Assembly (NCBI RefSeq): GCF_037042905.1
Contig: NC_087246.1
Span: forward strand, 12,772,001-12,836,000
Direction of reading: 5' to 3'
Length of the DNA stretch: 64,000 bases
From: Lytechinus pictus
Lineage: Eukaryota
Shown here one piece after another: positions 19,326 through 64,000 of this stretch. The notes beneath the pieces are model-generated. The model ran no database searches, had not been told where the DNA came from, and was given only the letters and a program-made list of their open reading frames with translations. Both the position numbers and the translations under genes were made by a program. Each line of letters opens with the position of its first letter. Positions within the stretch are counted from its first letter, which is position 1.

Positions 19326-21586
19326 AAGTGCACACCTCGTGACCAATAATGCATATAGCATTTACATTTATTTGAAAGCAGGATAAAAGAGCATTGAAGA
19401 TTAAATGCTTTGCTGACGGGCATAGGTGCCGCGGCCGGGGATCGTACCCCGGACTTTTTCATGTATAGCCAGGCGCCTTAGACCACTCGGCCACGGCACC
19501 TCCTAAATCTAATTGATCTAATACGATACGATACACTACACGAAGATAAACGATACTAGTTATAATCACGATAAATCGAGACATGAAAAAGTTAATAACG
19601 ATAATGACGTCATTCAAGATGGCAACTTGCAAGAAAAACCGTCAGGTCAGGTGAAAATGTCTTAGATGACAGATTTCTCAATCATCCAGAGGATTTTTTT
19701 CAATAACTCCGGCCCAAGGTATGCAATTACTTAAGTTATTTATATTACCCTGATAATGGAAACCATGAAAATGTCAATTTTGCCTAAAAAACAGTTTTAA
19801 ATCGCGATCTATAAAACGCTAGTTCACTATACGTTGGCTGTAGGTAGGGGCCCCCCTCCTCTTCAGTCTATGTATGGTGAGTGGAGCCAACGCAGTTCAG
19901 CGGAACAACCAAAATACAGAGACTGAAGCTTTTGGTCTATCACATTCCATGCATTCACGATGTTAATGATGCATGTTACTGTGTGAGTGAAGCAAGATAG
20001 CAGTTGAATTCCGTTGAACATCATCATCAGATCATGGCAATGCAAAATATTGTCTTTTTCTCTCATTATTTCAGTTGCTCAGTGCCCTGTTTCAAGGAGC
20101 ACAAATCAGAAGGTAAGTTTAACTTTAATAATGCTTTTTGGCTTTGTAATTATAAAATCATGAACATTGTCTCGACAGGCACAGTTTCATATTTGATTGC
20201 AAATCATTGTTCTTTCTATTGTTATTTTTTTATCTGTTCAACCAAATTTAAGTTATAATTTTGCCATGCAAAGAAAAGATTTGTGGCTGATGCAAATTGA
20301 ATATAATTAATTAATAACCATGTTTTGCAAGTACAGTATGTAAATGGAGCTGTAATATACATTACCAAGTGTTATTTCTAATTATTTTTCCCTCAGGGTC
20401 TTGTGAAAAGGAAAGTCTGAAGCCCAGTAGTGATGGAGGTCCTGTAAAAGAAGAAATCGCAAGAGGTACTAATACAAGCATATAATACATTATCTTTCCG
20501 TAGAGATAATTGTATTCTCATTTTTTTAGGAATAAAGATTTTAATTCAGATTGTGCAAATTGAAGTTTAAAATTAATTTTTATATGGATTTATAGTTTTA
20601 CTCATTAGAAGTTGTTCATCACATCAAACCAGTGGAATGTGGCATTAATTAATTTCTTATGTTTGTTAATTGCCAGCAGTATGTAAATGTTTTGTTTAAT
20701 GATATAGACCCATTAATCAAAATTAAAATTTGCTTTTATGTTTTGAAAAGGACCAGGCTGTATATTTTGTGTGTGGGTCTTTTGTGGAGAGGTCATTGTA
20801 TGCCTCAATTCATCTAAAACTGATATATTTATCTTTGCAGAAGATGGAGAAGTTTCAGGAGGTGATGAGGACATGAACAAAGAATCCACTCCAGACGAAC
20901 TCTCACAAAAACAGCTCAATAAACTGGGTAATCATTGCTTAATTTGCCTTTTTATTTCTTTAAACTGTTTCACAATTCTGATTTTCTCAGATTATCCATG
21001 CTCTCATTGTTATTTTCAAGCATTTAAAGAGCTTGCCCTGCATTAGAAGACTCACACTTGCCTCTCTTCAAAGCTAATAATTGTTATCTTATTAGATTGC
21101 AGTGGAATACCATTACATGTTTTGCTCAGTTAACTAGAATGATTTAAAGTGAATATGGATACTTGTTCTTTAGGTCATCAGGTGTCCCATATATTATCCC
21201 TCGGTAGACCAGCAGCACCACGATTGATGCTGCTGAGTAGGGCTATCCTGTTTTCATTTTGTTAATTTCACGTGTGTTATTTTATATGTATTGTTACTTG
21301 TTTTAAATGAAGTCAATTCAATAGTCCCATGGACTTATACATGTATAGTCTCAAAACTCTACATCTTCCTTCCATTCTATTATTTTCTATTCCAGATGAA
21401 TCAGACACAGTGAAAGATCTTCTTCAGAATCCCCATTTGAGGGTACTTGTTACACAGTTGGATCAAGCCAAGGAAAAGGATAAAGCCATAGAGCGTGTCA
21501 TGCAGGAACCTATTTTTGTGGAGTTTGCAGATGCCTGCCTTGCAGCAACAATAGGACAGGATCAAGATGCAGTTTCAGATAGATAA
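14026..21586 (+). CDS. ZNHIT3: Zinc finger HIT domain-containing protein 3 (box C/D snoRNP assembly factor), 5 exons, 154 aa
   Basis: Exons 14026-14105, 20075-20112, 20397-20465, 20841-20927, 21396-21586. All are GT-AG and in phase; total 465 nt. zf-HIT: [30 protein letters not shown]...C. C-terminal Hit1/ZNHIT3 motif: LLQNPHLR...MQEPIFVEFADACL. Confidence 0.94.
15273..16163. mobile_element. Non-autonomous hAT-like transposon in ZNHIT3 intron 1
   Basis: TIRs CAGTGGCGTA / TACGCCACTG; 8-bp TSD ttgagtac/ttgagcac; internal GAGCGCGAAGCGCGAG repeats and (TA)n. Confidence 0.85.
16172..16603. mobile_element. Truncated right end of the 7263-8794 element family
   Basis: CGGTGAAATCCGCCAGG...GGGGCAGCT...GCCTGTTACGCCA shared with 8741-8791. 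Confidence 0.6.
17488..19287 (-). mobile_element. 5'-truncated, internally deleted L1/Tx1-type LINE (dead ORF2)
   Basis: RT motifs AIDFEKAFDSVSH, RGVRHGDPLSPYLF, YADD (18856-19287); in-frame stops; C-terminal zf-RVT-like CSFCGNTEETYEHLFFSC; AATAAA (17509-17504) and A-tail (17495-17488). Confidence 0.9.
19288..19503 (-). mobile_element. tRNA-derived SINE with a 33-nt poly(A) tail
   Basis: 5' GGAGGTGCCG; A-box TGGCCGAGTGG; B-box-like GGTACGATCCC; AATAAA; uninterrupted A33. Confidence 0.85.
20075..20112 (+). CDS. ZNHIT3: ZNHIT3 exon 2 ([13 protein letters not shown])
   Basis: tttcag acceptor, AAG|GTAAGT donor. Confidence 0.93.
20397..20465 (+). CDS. ZNHIT3: ZNHIT3 exon 3 (GSCEKESLKP...)
   Basis: cctcag acceptor, GAG|GTACTA donor; supplies the last zf-HIT Cys. 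Confidence 0.85.
20841..20927 (+). CDS. ZNHIT3: ZNHIT3 exon 4 (EDGEVSGGDED...QLNKL)
   Basis: ttgcag acceptor, TGG|GTAATC donor. Confidence 0.88.
21396..21586 (+). CDS. ZNHIT3: ZNHIT3 exon 5 (DESDTVKDLLQNPHLR...*)
   Basis: ttccag acceptor, conserved C-terminal domain, TAA stop. Confidence 0.94.
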
Positions 21587-57400: not shown

Positions 57401-60076
57401 TCAAGGACTTTTTTGTAGTGTAACCATTCCAGTATATGATATGTAGTATCTCTCGTTGCTATGGTAACATAATTAGACGTCTGTTGAATTGGCGCGAAAG
57501 TTCCAATCACATAAACTGTTAAAAACAATTATAAGACTCAAACTTTATGATTATCTTTAAAAAGGCAGTAACAATGTTAGAAAGAAGGCAACGTTGAAAG
57601 GACAGTACATTTAGCATTAACTACAATTAATACAATTTTGTTTATAAAATGTCAATTCTTCGCTGTTAGCATGATGGGTTAACTTCTAGACAATAAAAGT
57701 AAATTTCAAAATTTTGTCAGAGATAGTAAATAAACTACAAATCTTAGAATTAGTCTTCCTTGTTTTAAAGATATGTTTGACTAATCATTTTTCAAATTGT
57801 GGGCAACAAGAACAAAAGACTTCTGCCATGCCTGAAAACAATAATCTAAGAATAATAATAACTCTTTTTATGGAAGATTCTGGAGGCGAAGTCTCTGATA
57901 GGACTTCCTAGGAAAGCTTCTAAAACAGGAAACGAAAAGAGAAAGTCCTTTTAATACTGCTATAAACAACATCCATGGATCATATAGTACACCACGCATA
58001 TCCGTAAATACCCTGGGCCAAGGCCCATTTACAGTGAGTCCATCTTAATAATTAAGAACCCATTCATACAAAATCAGATGTTACGTTTCCATGACAACTA
58101 AAAGAATCAGAATTGGAATATGCACTGACTGGGAACTAAATGGGCTTGCAATATTCTGTTACTACTATTGGCAGGGTTGTAAAATAACATCCCCATATAG
58201 GCAGCGCAGTTAGATATCAATTTTCTGGATGTAAATGTGTTCTAATGAACCTTACCATCTTAAGATGAAACCGTCCATCCGAATATCTAACGTGTCTACC
58301 AATATTGGATTAAATTGGAACATGCATGTTGGTTGGGTAAAAAAGATAACAAATATTTTATAAATTTTACGCAATGTTGCGTTCAAATAGCAAAAAATGT
58401 GGTGAATAAAAAACCCGGCAAACATGCTTGTTGCCTTTATTGGGTAAATTTTTACTCAGTGTTTTTAGAGTGTAGTATGCATTAGATTTATCCGGATAAA
58501 GACTTATTATGCTCAGTCGGTTCGACTTACCTACACCCTCTGGCCAATATCCAACTGAAGTTAATTGTTCTTCAGGCTACCGCGTTGTTTTCGTATAAAT
58601 GGAAGTAAAGTAATGAAAACATGTTATGTTTACTAAGATCGTATATCGCATTCAATGACCTCTCGAAGTAATAGAACCATTCACAATCTCCTCATGGCAA
58701 TCTGTCATCCGTGTTACCGATATTATATATTGAAGATTTACTCATTTCATAATTACAACTCTGATATTTTTCACCAATAATTTACCCAGCCCACACTCAC
58801 TGCTTCTGTGAGGTAATATAAGTTCTTGATTGAAAGAACCTGTTCATCTTATAACAGCCATACTTGTGGATCATTACTGACGGACCTTTACTCAATCAGC
58901 TAATCAGATGCAAGGATTTGCATTTAAATATCACTTTATGAAATACTTCACTGGTTACAAGTCAAATTGTCGTAAGTTTGATAAGAATATTATTGATAAT
59001 ATTATATAAACCCCAAAATGTTCACAGTGTGATGCTGTAATCAATTACGACGTGAGGTGAACTCGTGCGTATGTGGTATTCATCAGATTAAAAGGATGAT
59101 TTTAGGTATATAACAAAGTTTGGACTTGGCATCCTGCATGTTAGCCAGAGGATTTCCGGACATAGCAACATCAGATGTAAGCAAAGAGTAAGCTTACATT
59201 ACACGTAGTGTTATTATTGAAAATAGGTCAATGCATTGGGATATAAAATGTAATAAAGAAAAGAGTTAATACCTCAATACGACGTTTCAAGATAATAACA
59301 TCCATTATTGATACTAAGCCCAAGTAGGTAGACCTAATTGGCATGCATTTGCTTGCCTTTATTGGATAAATACTAATAATGCAATCCCTTAAGAAATTGA
59401 ATGATTTCGTGGGCATCACAAACTTTTACTTTTCATCGGTGAAAACTAGCAAATGAAAAGATGAATACTTCTTACCAAAACACTACCATGATTACGTGCA
59501 TAATTCAGTGTAATAGACAGAATATTTCAAGCATGATCAAGAAGAAAACTTGATGATACTTGACAACAGATGCAAATTGAAAAACTTTTCGGTGATAACT
59601 CACAGTCCTTCATTTTCAAATAGTGAAGGAATGTTACAGTTTATAAATGCTGATGACGTCTTGCTGCGGTGACATATAATTTGATTGCATCATTGCATTA
59701 TCTACAAATTTAAAGAGGTGAAAGACATTCATAATCTCCAGAAGGCTTTAGGGTTGCCTCGGGACGACAAACATCAGATCGTCGCTCACAGCTCAACTCG
59801 CACTACGTTATTCCCTATCCTTCGTCGGATTTACTTCACCTATTCATAATTGTGCTTCCAATGGACAACATCACCGAATATCAAAGAAACAAAAACTTCA
59901 GTGATGCTCTTTAATGTTGTAGTTTTAAACGACAATGTGCTGAATTTACATCACATTGCATTATGCATTTCATCAGCCACAATCCCATGCGATGCTTGTT
60001 TCCCAAAACAAACTATCCTCAAGGTGATTATAAGATTAACCTTACACTCAAGAACACAGAACTCTAATCTCTTCGA

Positions 60077-61339
60077 TCAACTGTTGTCTCCTGGTGTCTT
60101 ATGCCATCCATATCTCTCGTGTGTTTCCACGATGGCGCGAAAACTGACCTCAGCCTCTTGTTTGTTGAATGGGACATCAGTACGAAATCCAGACTGCACG
60201 ATTCGACCGTCCCCCGCTATTAGCGTCGCACCAAGCTGCATGATGACGGCGTCGATGGTGTAGGAACTAGACCACCCTTGCGGAGTGAGCAGTTCCATGC
60301 AGATGGCACCACCATCAAGAACATAACCATATTCGACATGTGGGCTGACAACGCGGACGAACGGTGGAGAAAAGGGGAAGTTGTCAGGGAAGGTCATATT
60401 GAACAGGATGTACTCGAAGTTGTGTTTTTTCATGTCCTTGTATAGAGCCGATTTTGGATCGACGTGAAATAATTTGATATTCCAATCGGCCAGGCTATCA
60501 TTGACTAGCTCCACCTCGTATGGTGGTCCTGTTAGTTTCTCATAAGTCATGAAGCCACCATCCGATAATGCCTTTTTGACTGCCTCTGCCCCTTCCTGTG
60601 ATTGGCTTTCACTATTCTCCTTTGTGTCATCTACCGTAGATGTGGAACAACTAGTTGTAGCTTCTGTATCACTTTCAGATTTATTGTTACATTCCTTTGC
60701 AGAATCATCTTCTTTGTCGGTTTCATTTTCACTGCTCTCCAATTTCGCTTCAGATTTTTCTTTTACACATTCACTCTTCTCACCATCTTTAATGTCAACT
60801 TCCTCTTTCAATACATCTTTATTTTGGTCTATATCTATGTTTTCATTTGCACGTCGTTCCTTTTCCTCCGATTCCATTTTCCTTGCATCCTCGGTAATTT
60901 TCGTCACCGCTTTGAATTCTTTCATGAGCCTTCTCATCCTCACATTACTAACGTATGCTTTGCTGGGCTGTGGAATCCTCATTAATGTCTCTGTTGATAA
61001 TACCCTAGTGCCGTCCGCAACGTTGTATTTGAGTTCCTCCGTGCTTGCTTCCTTATCATCCGCGGTGGATACTGTCCCCGGCAGCTCAGCTTTATCCCGG
61101 AGTGCATCCCCGTAGCCATGAACATCGTCCCCTGCTCCTGAGATCGAAAATATGGTAAGGCTCCCGTTTCGAGTGATTGTCACCGAATCTTCCACCCCAC
61201 TTGTACTCATCTGTCCACCTTGATTGTTTTTGTGGCGCTTCCTGGCCAAGGCTCTAACCTTGGATCTGGCACTTCTTCGCCCACTGACGTTTTCCAGTGG
61301 CAGGCACGGGCATAGGTATTTACCAATAAATTCGGCCAT
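60077..61339 (-). CDS. UBE2QL1: Ubiquitin-conjugating enzyme E2 Q-like (UBE2QL1-like), single coding exon, 420 aa
   Basis: UBC domain matching UBE2QL1 motifs as recalled: [65 protein letters not shown] (catalytic Cys347 at 60301-60299), [18 protein letters not shown]. Orthologue versus paralogue not established. Confidence 0.88.
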
Positions 61340-61820
61340 TGTAAGTTGGTGTGTATGCTCCCTGATGGTCTTGCACAGACGGTTCTAAGTCAGACAGCAT
61401 GAAATAATGACATCCATAATTATTGAACCGTACTCAACAGCCCACACGACTCTGCCAAATTACACACTTCACCACCAATGCAGTATCCTTAAAAATGTAG
61501 AAATATCACATCTTTTATTTCACGTATAAAAGATGCTTACAACTGGATTCACAATAAAACTGTCATAATGATGATGGACTAGAATCTGCTTTTCGTGTCA
61601 GTAGTAAATTCTGCATGACTTAATTCACCAAACTTATGGGCGCTTAAAAAATGTTTTGTGGTATAAGCGAATCGATGAGAAGTAACAAACAAAATGTCGA
61701 TTGAAGTTTGTATGGCCTCACTTGGCAATATATACTCCGATCCAAGTTATGTACTCGGTGAAGGAGGACAAACTCCGTGCTCTCTCTTCAACCACCAGTT
61801 GCTCTGTGAGGTTTGAGGGA

Positions 61821-61842
61821 CTTATATCTCGTGTCACGTGAG
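61821..61842 (-). promoter_or_regulatory. Candidate promoter of the UBE2QL1-like gene: CLEAR-like E-box CTCACGTGAC followed by TATAAG
   Basis: Minus-strand CTCACGTGAC (61842-61833), then TATAAG (61826-61821). Plausible 5'UTR intron 61721-61385 (CAA|GTGAGG ... cttag). Confidence 0.45.
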
Positions 61843-64000
61843 ATTTGCGAGTCGCACGCAGAGAGTGGATTGATGTGATGCACGCATGCTCCACATATCT
61901 GTGTTACGATGGTCGCTTCTGAATTCATCGGCTTTGAGTTACAAGAGAGTGATTCAGCGTGCTGAATGCTGTGGGTGTGTTATTATGGCCCAGACGAAGA
62001 TGGAGCTAACGGTATAGCAAGGATCGAAAAGGCCAAACGATTTATTTGATTAGAAAAGGGAAACATAAATGATCAGTCCTGTAAATGATTGCACTTTCAT
62101 TTCCATTTTGACCAATGCCACTCACAGTTTCGGCACTTACAATAATTGGACGATGAATAAATTAATTCTTTCCCGACTTGAAACGCACCAATTTGCCAGA
62201 TTGCAATATTGCAAATAATTACTTTATACGCAGAGATGTAGATATGGTTTTGGAGGTCGATAATAAATAAACCATAAAACATATTAAAATGTCCAATTGT
62301 ATTGACACCTTGGTGTTTGGGATGTGCGTGAGAATGTGTTGGTGTGGTGAGGGAGGGTGTGTGTGTGCGAGTGTGTAACATTCACGTGTACGCTAGAGTG
62401 TATGTCTGTACGTGTTGAGATTAATAAAGGTATTAAAAATACTATGCAACAAAATTACATTACAGCATTGATTTCAATTTTTATGTGTATAATTATATTG
62501 AGATGTCTCATGACTCAATAACCTCGCAAAAGTCAATGTAATTCATTATATTGTCTTCTTTGTATTTGCCCTCCCTCCCCTCTCTCTCTCTATCCATTTA
62601 TAAACCTCTCTTCCTTCCTTTGGCTCTCATTCCATTTATCTATCTTCCCATTCTCGGCAATAATTAATAACGCTGTCTTCAGTTTGTTTCTCATTTTAAC
62701 TTTATACTTCCAATGCTCATCACGCATGTGAGAACCTTTAGTGTTTTTTTTTTGGGTGTAGATCAATTATACAAAGCTTAAACAAATATTGAAGATACCA
62801 TAAAATAATAAAACGATCATTTAAATTATAGAATGAAAGCGTCTGATAAGTAACTTCTTTTTTTAAAGTTCGTGTTCAGTCTAGAATTAAAGGTTGATGA
62901 TTATGTAATACATCACCAAACCCAATAACCAGCAATTCTTAAAAGAAAAAAAAACTGTGAAAACATGATCACTTTATGCTTGCCTCCTAATTATATATTC
63001 CAAAACACGTTTTCTGTTGAAAAAATGTCATAATGACTTTGAAAAATAATTTGAAATAATATTCAATAAAACCCATTGAATTCATTCGGTGCCATATTGG
63101 GGTCAAGTGTGTGTTTAAGGACCATTCTCCTTCACAACCCATCTACTGTAACTCCTATGTGTCGTTTATTATGGTAAAAGAAAAACATAGTGTGCTCCCG
63201 TCTGCCATTTAAAGACTTATTGTCAATTGAATGAATGAGAGGGTATTGTGTTGATAATAGTGTGGCTAGTTAATCTTGATCATCAAGAGGGTCACCCTTT
63301 TCTTGATTGTGATATGATCTATGACACTTAAGGTTTACACATCGATGAGTATGACGAGTTTGAAATTTTAATGCCAGAATCTAGTTGCATCTGTCCGTTG
63401 ACGTACAATCACCAGCATCTGGTTGTCGCGTACGTTTGAATCCATGATGGATCTAGTTACACAGAAAATTAGTCAAAATTCATTTAAGACACGACGTTTT
63501 GTGTGAAAAATCGCTTCTGTTGGGCATCAGTTTTTTATTGATCTTAATCTGTAATTTGTGATGGATCCAGTATTAAAGAATTCGGTCTCAAATTGAAGTA
63601 TTGATTTCACTAATTTTAAAGCAAATACGAACCAGGACCCCTCAAGTCATCAACTATTCATATCCGGTCAGGTTCCTAATCCATAATGCATCATTCTCAG
63701 CAGTGTAATATTGTTATATAAACCCACTTGAATGGTAAAACACTAATCGTCTACTTATTATATTCATACCACAAGTATTATGTTAGCAAGTACCTATAAA
63801 CAAGAACTTTTCCTGTAGAGATTTTTTAATATCTCTCTTCAAATGAAATGATAGGCTAATTCGTTCTCTAAATTATTAATTGTTATTAGAAAAATACATT
63901 TTAAGACTAGCCATTTATGCAGGCAGTCCATGACAGACCACACCCAATGTCGCTCCCAATTCAATGAGTAAAGAGTCAAACTGTCAAATATGAAACCAAA

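Follow-up and report, generated by a model that had tools for sequence, protein, structure and literature searches.

We analyzed a stretch of 64,000 nucleotides (nt) of the sea urchin Lytechinus pictus (NC_087246.1, positions 12,772,001 to 12,836,000 of the forward strand), here referred to as the window. Near its end, the minus strand carries the complete coding sequence (CDS) of a ubiquitin-conjugating enzyme (E2) of the UBE2QL1/CG4502 type, the coordinates of which are given with those of its features in Table 1. An earlier note, made from the letters of the window, had described the product as a UBE2QL1-like E2 with an intact catalytic cysteine in the motif GGAICMELL and with an acidic insertion of about 120 amino acids (aa) inside the ubiquitin-conjugating (UBC) fold, between helix 1 and strand 1. 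Our analysis confirmed the enzyme, its cysteine and the insertion; the acidity of the insertion proved not to be conserved.

The 420-aa product of the open reading frame (ORF) is ~100% identical to the nr/RefSeq protein XP_054768078.1, annotated as "ubiquitin-conjugating enzyme E2 Q2-like [Lytechinus pictus]". Its best matches outside the echinoderms, from E values of ~1e-57 downward, are named UBE2QL1 or CG4502; the sole exception is a Plutella gene model (P0005) that contains an RWD domain, scores higher and covers 28% of the query. Furthermore, the start motif M-A-x-x-L-x-K and the tail YGW..P are common to the urchin enzyme and to UBE2QL1 of other phyla. A Pfam search recognized UQ_con (PF00179) at aa 272-373, with 37 bits against a cutoff of 27; the insert interrupts the alignment to helix 1, so that the match begins only at strand 1. 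The same search revealed no RWD domain at E values up to 0.1, and UBE2QL1 is known as a protein without this domain (PMC6776906). Among sequences of solved structures, the protein matched UBE2Q1 (2qgx, E value of 3e-45) and UBE2Q2 (1zuo, E value of 2e-42), the alignments running from aa 253/266 to 408/412. By its closest relatives and the shared terminal motifs, the gene is probably an intronless, expressed sea-urchin orthologue of UBE2QL1.

Cys347 of the L. pictus protein corresponds to C88 of human UBE2QL1 and to C351 of UBE2Q1. The His-Pro-Asn (HPN) triad is absent from the protein, and residues Y339, H407 and W412 align to Y343, H409 and W414 of UBE2Q1. These three residues of UBE2Q1 were reported to be essential for non-canonical ubiquitylation of Ser/Thr and sugars, and the whole family lacks HPN (PMC10971424). 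With an otherwise intact catalytic domain, the urchin enzyme should still be charged by the ubiquitin-activating enzyme (E1) and discharge ubiquitin.

The helix-1 motif occupies aa 133-145 (window positions 60905-60943) and the strand-1 motif aa 273-283 (60491-60523). Between them, the 363 nt at 60530-60892 encode exactly aa 150-270, and the insert itself, aa 147-265, consists of 119 residues (36 D/E, 19 K/R and 24 S/T) in an uninterrupted frame; all the landmarks of the earlier note were placed correctly. Measured from the E of RLMKE to the W of strand 2, the spacing is 22-35 residues in 199 of the 211 family proteins examined and 145-173 residues in all 11 sea-urchin sequences, which bears out the note's claim of a short normal distance between the two elements. 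A spacing of 62 was found in one further protein, P0266, which we rejected as a true long-spacing case, as it looks like a gene model with intron read-through or a mis-assembly. This 202-aa protein contains a hydrophobic 30-residue stretch between two copies of the strand-1 sequence and has an aberrant C terminus.

It could be argued that the 363-nt segment is a retained intron or an annotation artefact, normally spliced out, and that the real protein has a standard UBC domain. The low complexity and poor conservation of the segment would fit this explanation, and the RNA evidence at the locus comes from contigs of runs that are only guessed to be RNA. However, no intron interrupts the CDS of L. 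pictus, Lytechinus variegatus, Strongylocentrotus purpuratus, Diadema antillarum or a Logan-assembled close relative of S. purpuratus. In these five urchin sequences, which span a deep divergence, the frame of the insert is open, and insertions and deletions invariably change its length by multiples of three. Intronless CDSs were found in six echinoderm genomes in all, including two without the insert (the sea star Asterias and the brittle star Amphiura), while the one CDS intron of the pike orthologue lies elsewhere, after VKGQ near the C terminus and far from the insert site. Because of this arrangement, we also rejected an exonised ancestral intron as the origin of the insert. In addition, removal of aa 150-270 would take away the conserved Gly270 of the LTGPP turn that precedes strand 1.

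Substitution rates pointed in the same direction. Between L. pictus and L. variegatus (Nei-Gojobori method; synonymous divergence, dS, ~0.1 and unsaturated), the ratio of non-synonymous to synonymous divergence (dN/dS) was 0.34 for the insert and 0.05 for the rest of the gene (Fisher p = 0.002). The changes in the insert, 13 non-synonymous and 8 synonymous, place it below neutrality at p = 0.03. Between L. pictus and S. purpuratus, the values were 0.24 for the insert and 0.025 for the core, with dS near saturation. The evolution of the insert is hence relaxed but non-neutral.

Contigs assembled from public sequencing runs were compared with the window over positions 58000-63000. Those of run X2 span ~59641-61648 and leave zero cover at 58501-59502 and 61674-63000, which is the pattern of a 2-kb transcript, not of genomic DNA. 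Contigs of runs X1, X2 and X6, which come from three studies and two organisms, bridge both borders of the insert, and no splice joint was found within 60077-61339 in the contigs of four runs. Length differences between organism B and the window fall in the presumed untranslated regions (UTRs) only, outside the CDS. The spliced form that the earlier note had named as a refutation of its own reading was thus looked for in these contigs without success. Collectively, the open frame with its in-frame length changes, the intronless CDSs, the dN/dS below 1 and the contigs crossing both borders indicate that the insert is coding and not an intron. The retained-intron explanation is already largely refuted, and we give it hardly any credence. 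From the same nucleotide-level data, the insert would appear to be translated as part of the E2.

Alignments showed that the insert is absent in sea stars, brittle stars, amphioxus, vertebrates, chelicerates and insects. An exhaustive HMMER search of 1.84 billion cluster representatives returned a sole end-to-end match, a Diadema sequence that represents an urchin cluster. Apparent long matches to the insert in other proteins were dismissed as not homologous; they are low-complexity linkers located before helix 1 in proteins with a short spacing between helix 1 and strand 1. As far as the sequences compared allow us to tell, the insert is specific to sea urchins and general in their UBE2QL1. 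The alternative foreseen by the earlier note, a general feature of invertebrate UBE2QL1, did not materialize, as the other sampled taxa are without the insert. Such a distribution would make the insertion older than the split between Diadema and the camarodonts and younger than the separation of sea urchins from sea stars and brittle stars.

No other copies of the insert DNA were found in the 812-Mb assembly, and no tandem repeat was found in the L. pictus insert. On the grounds of this single-copy status and the missing tandem repeat, we rejected a repeat or transposon origin. The insert of S. purpuratus contains an expansion of G-A-E-[EK] repeats, and the length of the insert differs by 18 alignment columns between two close strongylocentrotid sequences; slippage therefore continues to reshape it. 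A hidden domain was rejected as well, since no Pfam family matched within the insert.

Across the urchins, the insert measures ~105-135 residues. The content of hydrophobic residues is low in all of them (7-10% ILVFMWY), and what is conserved is the presence of a hydrophilic segment and its approximate length. Identity to Diadema at the amino acid level is only 17-25%. Two short islands stand out from this background. The first, with the pattern S-[ST]-S-T-V-D in all urchins, may be a phosphorylation or docking motif. The second, comprising the last ~20 residues of the insert, evolves as slowly as the core; its identity among urchins is 65-95%, compared with 17-51% for the body of the insert, and neither sea stars nor any other taxa of the alignment possess it. 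A short helix is predicted within this second island, at aa 246-259 in L. pictus, where the predicted local distance difference test score (pLDDT) is ~48-57, and at 253-265 in Diadema, with pLDDT of ~65.

Next to the insert, helix 1 is strictly preserved. In alignments of 17, 78 and 84 family sequences, R137, M139, K140 and E141 of helix 1 do not vary, nor does the active-site segment, and there is not a single non-synonymous change in helix 1 between L. pictus and L. variegatus. An AlphaFold2 (AF2) model of the L. pictus protein, built from the 78-sequence alignment, has a core with pLDDT of ~90, a helix at 127-172 (~89-93), a segment at 184-246 below 50 and the weak helix at 246-259. The helix at 127-172 represents helix 1 lengthened by ~26 charged residues. 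Residues 130..405 of the model align to residues 1..160 of UBE2Q1 (2qgx_B), helix 1 included (156 aa, Z score of 17.1, root-mean-square deviation of 2.8), and the comparison with 1zuo_B yielded a Z score of 19.2. Because the match to 2qgx_B begins at its residue 1, helix 1 sits in the canonical place in this model, with ~120 residues looped out. The insert as a whole, with ~65-90 residues predicted as disordered, would be mostly intrinsically disordered.

To this we added a split-chain docking of aa 122-175 onto aa 266-420. It scored 0.83, against 0.01 for the best of 3 controls; of 78 solved complexes and 108 mismatched pairs, 51 and 2, respectively, attained that mark. The docking runs agreed in at least 98% of contacts, with a partner pLDDT of at least 75. 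The contacts are those canonical for helix 1 of a UBC domain: L138 with L283, F317 and F321, and E141-V145 with T361-D363. That urchins strictly conserve RLMKE likewise favours packing of helix 1 on the core, which we consider likely on the basis of these models. The UBC core itself is canonical in the models. The structure prediction called for by the earlier note thus gave a divided answer, since helix 1 packs in the model of L. pictus and does not in that of Diadema.

Another possibility is that the RLMKE helix has left the core and that the short helix at aa 246-259 takes over part of the role of helix 1 or covers its groove, which would give an E2 with altered or conditional recognition of E1 and ubiquitin ligases (E3s). 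In favour of such an uncoupling, a phmmer search paired aa 253-271 with helix 1 of UBE2Q2 (1zuo), all urchins retain the short helix, which both models predict, and helix 1 of the Diadema model does not superpose on the canonical one. The short helix has, however, no real similarity to helix 1, to which it remained unaligned in both fold searches; a duplication of helix 1, which the phmmer alignment had suggested, was also dropped upon inspection. Moreover, the invariance of R137, M139, K140 and E141, the helix-1 conservation between the two Lytechinus species and the canonical docking in both the L. pictus model and the split-chain test all speak against uncoupling, which we regard as improbable.

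A further explanation takes up the proposal of the earlier note that a disordered acidic loop next to the E1/E3 interface could gate charging or partner choice. The tethered loop would bind the basic face of helix 1 (R134, R136, R137, K140 and K143) in cis and act as an autoinhibitory gate that regulates E1 charging or E3 choice, possibly under the control of phosphorylation. The insert is indeed anchored directly at helix 1, which is itself basic, it carries a net charge of -17 (L. pictus) or -21 (S. purpuratus and its relative), and Ser/Thr make up 18-21% of the inserts of these camarodonts. The weak purifying selection argues that the insert is not pure junk, and relatives resembling UBE2Q1/Q2 possess an acidic low-complexity linker beside helix 1, although on its N-terminal side. 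In contrast, the Diadema insert has a net charge of +4 and only 16% D/E, and mainly for this reason the gate idea is weakened: acidity is not conserved. The body of the insert shares as little as 17-25% identity with that of Diadema, and the conserved islands are not acidic stretches. In neither model does the loop lie on helix 1; it is simply of low confidence. From what is generally known of E2s, a loop leaving at the C-terminal end of helix 1 emerges beside strand 1 and the "backside" sheet, far from the E3-binding tip and from the active site. An acidic gate therefore appears unlikely, if the least unlikely of the alternatives weighed here.

The reading that we favour, and hold to be probable, is that a surface loop has expanded into a disordered segment that is tolerated and under weak constraint, with any function confined to the two conserved islands. 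This expansion, from a short helix-1/strand-1 loop to ~105-135 translated residues, would have taken place in echinoids before Diadema and the camarodonts diverged. The catalytic domain is otherwise intact, and helix 1 most likely packs on the core, the insert projecting outward from its C-terminal end. The body of the insert behaves like a rapidly changing spacer, prone to indels and subject to weak purifying selection, and the conserved islands would be the likely functional parts, for instance a docking or phosphorylation motif together with an element packing in cis.

Several points weigh against this reading. Orthologues from holothurians, crinoids and cidaroids lie outside the sampled set, so the age of the insert is loosely bounded. 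Synonymous divergence is saturated in the deeper comparisons, and the counts between L. pictus and L. variegatus are small. That the sequencing runs represent RNA is a guess, their contigs leave room for a rare spliced isoform, and the support for translation is at the level of nucleic acid, not of protein. As for the structure, the successful docking may reflect the model's memory of solved UBC folds. Structural alignments of the Diadema AF2 model begin at residue 275-278, that is, at strand 1, and helix 1 (132-154, pLDDT of 73-88) is not docked on the core; the model has a predicted template modelling score of 0.41 and a 90-residue low-confidence loop.

The insert may also be viewed as a built-in regulatory module and not as a passive spacer, in which case the terminal helix and S-[ST]-S-T-V-D would act in cis on the region of helix 1 and the backside, allowing E1 charging, E3 pairing or backside binding to be switched in a phosphorylation-dependent manner. 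Such a module would be an intramolecular counterpart of the trans-acting backside-binding elements of other E2s. We consider it doubtful, slightly more so than the acidic gate and less so than an uncoupled helix 1.

Table 1. Features of the UBE2QL1-type gene (AF2, AlphaFold2; aa numbering of the 420-aa protein)
Feature	Window position	Strand	Remarks
UBE2QL1/CG4502-type E2 CDS, complete, single exon	60077..61339	-	1,263-nt ORF, 420 aa + stop
Transcript, approximate extent	59640..61650	-	~310 nt 5' UTR + CDS + ~440 nt 3' UTR; run X2 contigs; ends approximate
N-terminal region, aa 1-125, predicted mostly disordered	60965..61339	-	pLDDT <50 at aa 10-114; dN/dS 0.03-0.08
Canonical UBC helix 1, aa 127-146, with invariant R137, M139, K140, E141	60902..60961	-	pLDDT ~91-93; superposes on helix 1 of 2qgx and 1zuo
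Insert start, charged helix-1 extension, aa 147-172	60824..60901	-	AF2 helix 127-172, pLDDT ~89-93; not conserved in Diadema
Insert body, low-complexity, predicted disordered, aa 173-245	60605..60823	-	pLDDT <50 at 184-246; dN/dS 0.34 vs L. variegatus
Conserved island 1, C-S-T-S-T-V-D-D, aa 231-238	60626..60649	-	S-[ST]-S-T-V-D in all urchins (alignments)
Conserved island 2, E-A-[VI]-K-K-A...G-G-F-M..E.L-T-G-P-P, aa 246-271	60527..60604	-	Short low-confidence helix just before strand 1
UBC core, strand 1 to C terminus, aa 272-420	60080..60526	-	Pfam UQ_con, 2qgx/1zuo matches; dN/dS 0.03-0.06
Catalytic Cys347 codon	60299..60301	-	GGAICMELL (aa 343-351) invariant in 78-84 aligned family members
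UBE2Q-type "YHW" triad codons	60104..60325	-	Y339 (60323-60325), H407 (60119-60121), W412 (60104-60106); 2qgx alignment

At the place corresponding to the charged helix-1 extension of L. pictus, the predicted helix of Diadema ends at residue 154 and the sequence reads AAGGLPAKE.

Within the family, human UBE2QL1, Caenorhabditis elegans UBC-25 and Drosophila CG4502 are 55-61% identical to the urchin enzyme over the UBC core. They share with it the cysteine in GGAICMELL, the C-terminal HE(K/R)YGW, the M-A-x-x-L-x-K start and the V-R-x-R-R-L-M-K-E helix 1, and likewise have neither HPN nor an RWD domain. Unlike the urchin proteins with their additional ~105-135 residues, they connect helix 1 and strand 1 by a loop of a few residues. 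Another difference concerns the C terminus, where the human protein has VTPPVS and the urchin protein HKTPGDNS; VTPPVS has been proposed to be an FBXW7 motif (PMC4028990). Human UBE2QL1 and C. elegans UBC-25 were reported to function in the lysosomal damage response, lysophagy and lysosome integrity (PMC6776906).

UBE2Q1 and UBE2Q2, non-canonical E2s that ubiquitylate Ser/Thr and sugars (PMC10971424), provide the closest solved structures (2qgx and 1zuo; ~50% identity, Z scores of 17-19), and their Tyr/His/Trp triad is conserved in the urchin. They differ in having an N-terminal RWD domain and in the position of their acidic low-complexity linker, which precedes helix 1, whereas the urchin insert follows it. 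In three UBE2Q1/Q2-like proteins (P0189, P0183 and P0142), helix 1 directly follows such a linker, which is strongly acidic. The family thus contains more than one case of helix 1 flanked by an acidic disordered segment, here on the side opposite to that of the urchin insert.

The acidic loop of Cdc34/UBE2R and UBE2G/Ubc7 is likewise an insertion within the UBC fold, and in some lineages the urchin insert is acidic, too. That loop consists of ~12-13 residues, is ordered or semi-ordered, lies beside the active site and tunes chain building. In comparison, the urchin insert is about ten times longer, predicted to be disordered, located on the far side from the catalytic cysteine and not consistently acidic.

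The comparison also touched on the N-terminal regions of these proteins. In the human UBE2QL1 used in functional studies, C88 and VTPPVS at 154-159 (PMC4028990) imply a numbering whose residue 1 counts to the Met inside RRL-M-KE. The human form would thus be without the first half of helix 1 and without a conserved N-terminal region of ~140 aa (start MATLLRKIGLIRL), which is found in other, ~300-aa vertebrate models, in echinoderms and in arthropods. The human reference form may therefore be N-terminally truncated. The start motif, M-A-x-x-[LI]-x-K, is common to vertebrate and arthropod UBE2QL1, and its A2 and K7 are invariant in the alignment. In the urchins, aa 1-15 (window positions 61294-61339) contain two or three cysteines (C-P-C-L-P) that do not occur in the aligned sequences of other phyla. 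These might constitute a lipidation or membrane-anchoring site, which would be relevant to an enzyme acting at lysosomes.

The RefSeq model of L. variegatus has 440 aa, as an upstream in-frame ATG adds 20 residues (L011:1501-1560, compared with window positions 61340-61384). In L. pictus, the frame upstream of the 420-aa start is open (435 aa) and without an ATG. We favour the 420-aa form because the M-A-E-F start is conserved.

Some further features were observed in the window and in the genome. A second UBC exon of the UBE2Q type lies at G000:C5:22434632-22434898 (L006); it matches aa 22-114 of the core query with 57% identity, shows a single stop at the match boundary and probably belongs to an intron-containing UBE2Q1/Q2 orthologue. 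Two plus-strand ORFs of 188 aa and 127 aa overlap the insert in antisense (60549-61115); we rejected them as genes, since their Ser/Phe/Leu-rich sequences simply mirror the low complexity of the coding strand. At 58167-58500, the contigs of all four runs reach a very high depth (up to ~675), and short skips and loose ends are numerous; this segment is probably a dispersed repeat just downstream of the 3' region of the gene. Elsewhere in the window, an internal promoter or alternative first exon of ZNHIT3 had earlier been proposed at 19603-19724.

The catalytic domains of E2s are among the most structurally uniform of enzymes, and the few internal insertions known, such as the acidic loop of Cdc34/UBE2G, have clear functional consequences. 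In the sea urchins, a segment of more than 100 residues has been tolerated in the loop between helix 1 and strand 1 and kept through echinoid evolution. We found no published description of it in the literature on UBE2QL1, CG4502 or UBE2Q with sea urchin. The urchin E2 is thus an undescribed structural variant of a known enzyme; the variant is real and the position of its insert unusual. The insert bears the usual marks of disordered insertions that are lineage-specific, and novelty at the level of mechanism is not indicated. For annotation, it should be noted that Pfam sees a shortened UBC domain starting at aa 272, which could be misread as an E2 without helix 1.

It is more likely that the insert represents a lineage-specific disordered expansion of limited general significance. 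If, on the other hand, it proved to be regulatory, it would constitute a new mode of E2 control. The loop between helix 1 and strand 1 presents itself as a permissive site for engineered tags or sensors, and the pair of sea urchin and sea star enzymes offers a ready comparison for the effect of tethered disorder on the recognition of E1 and E3 by helix 1.

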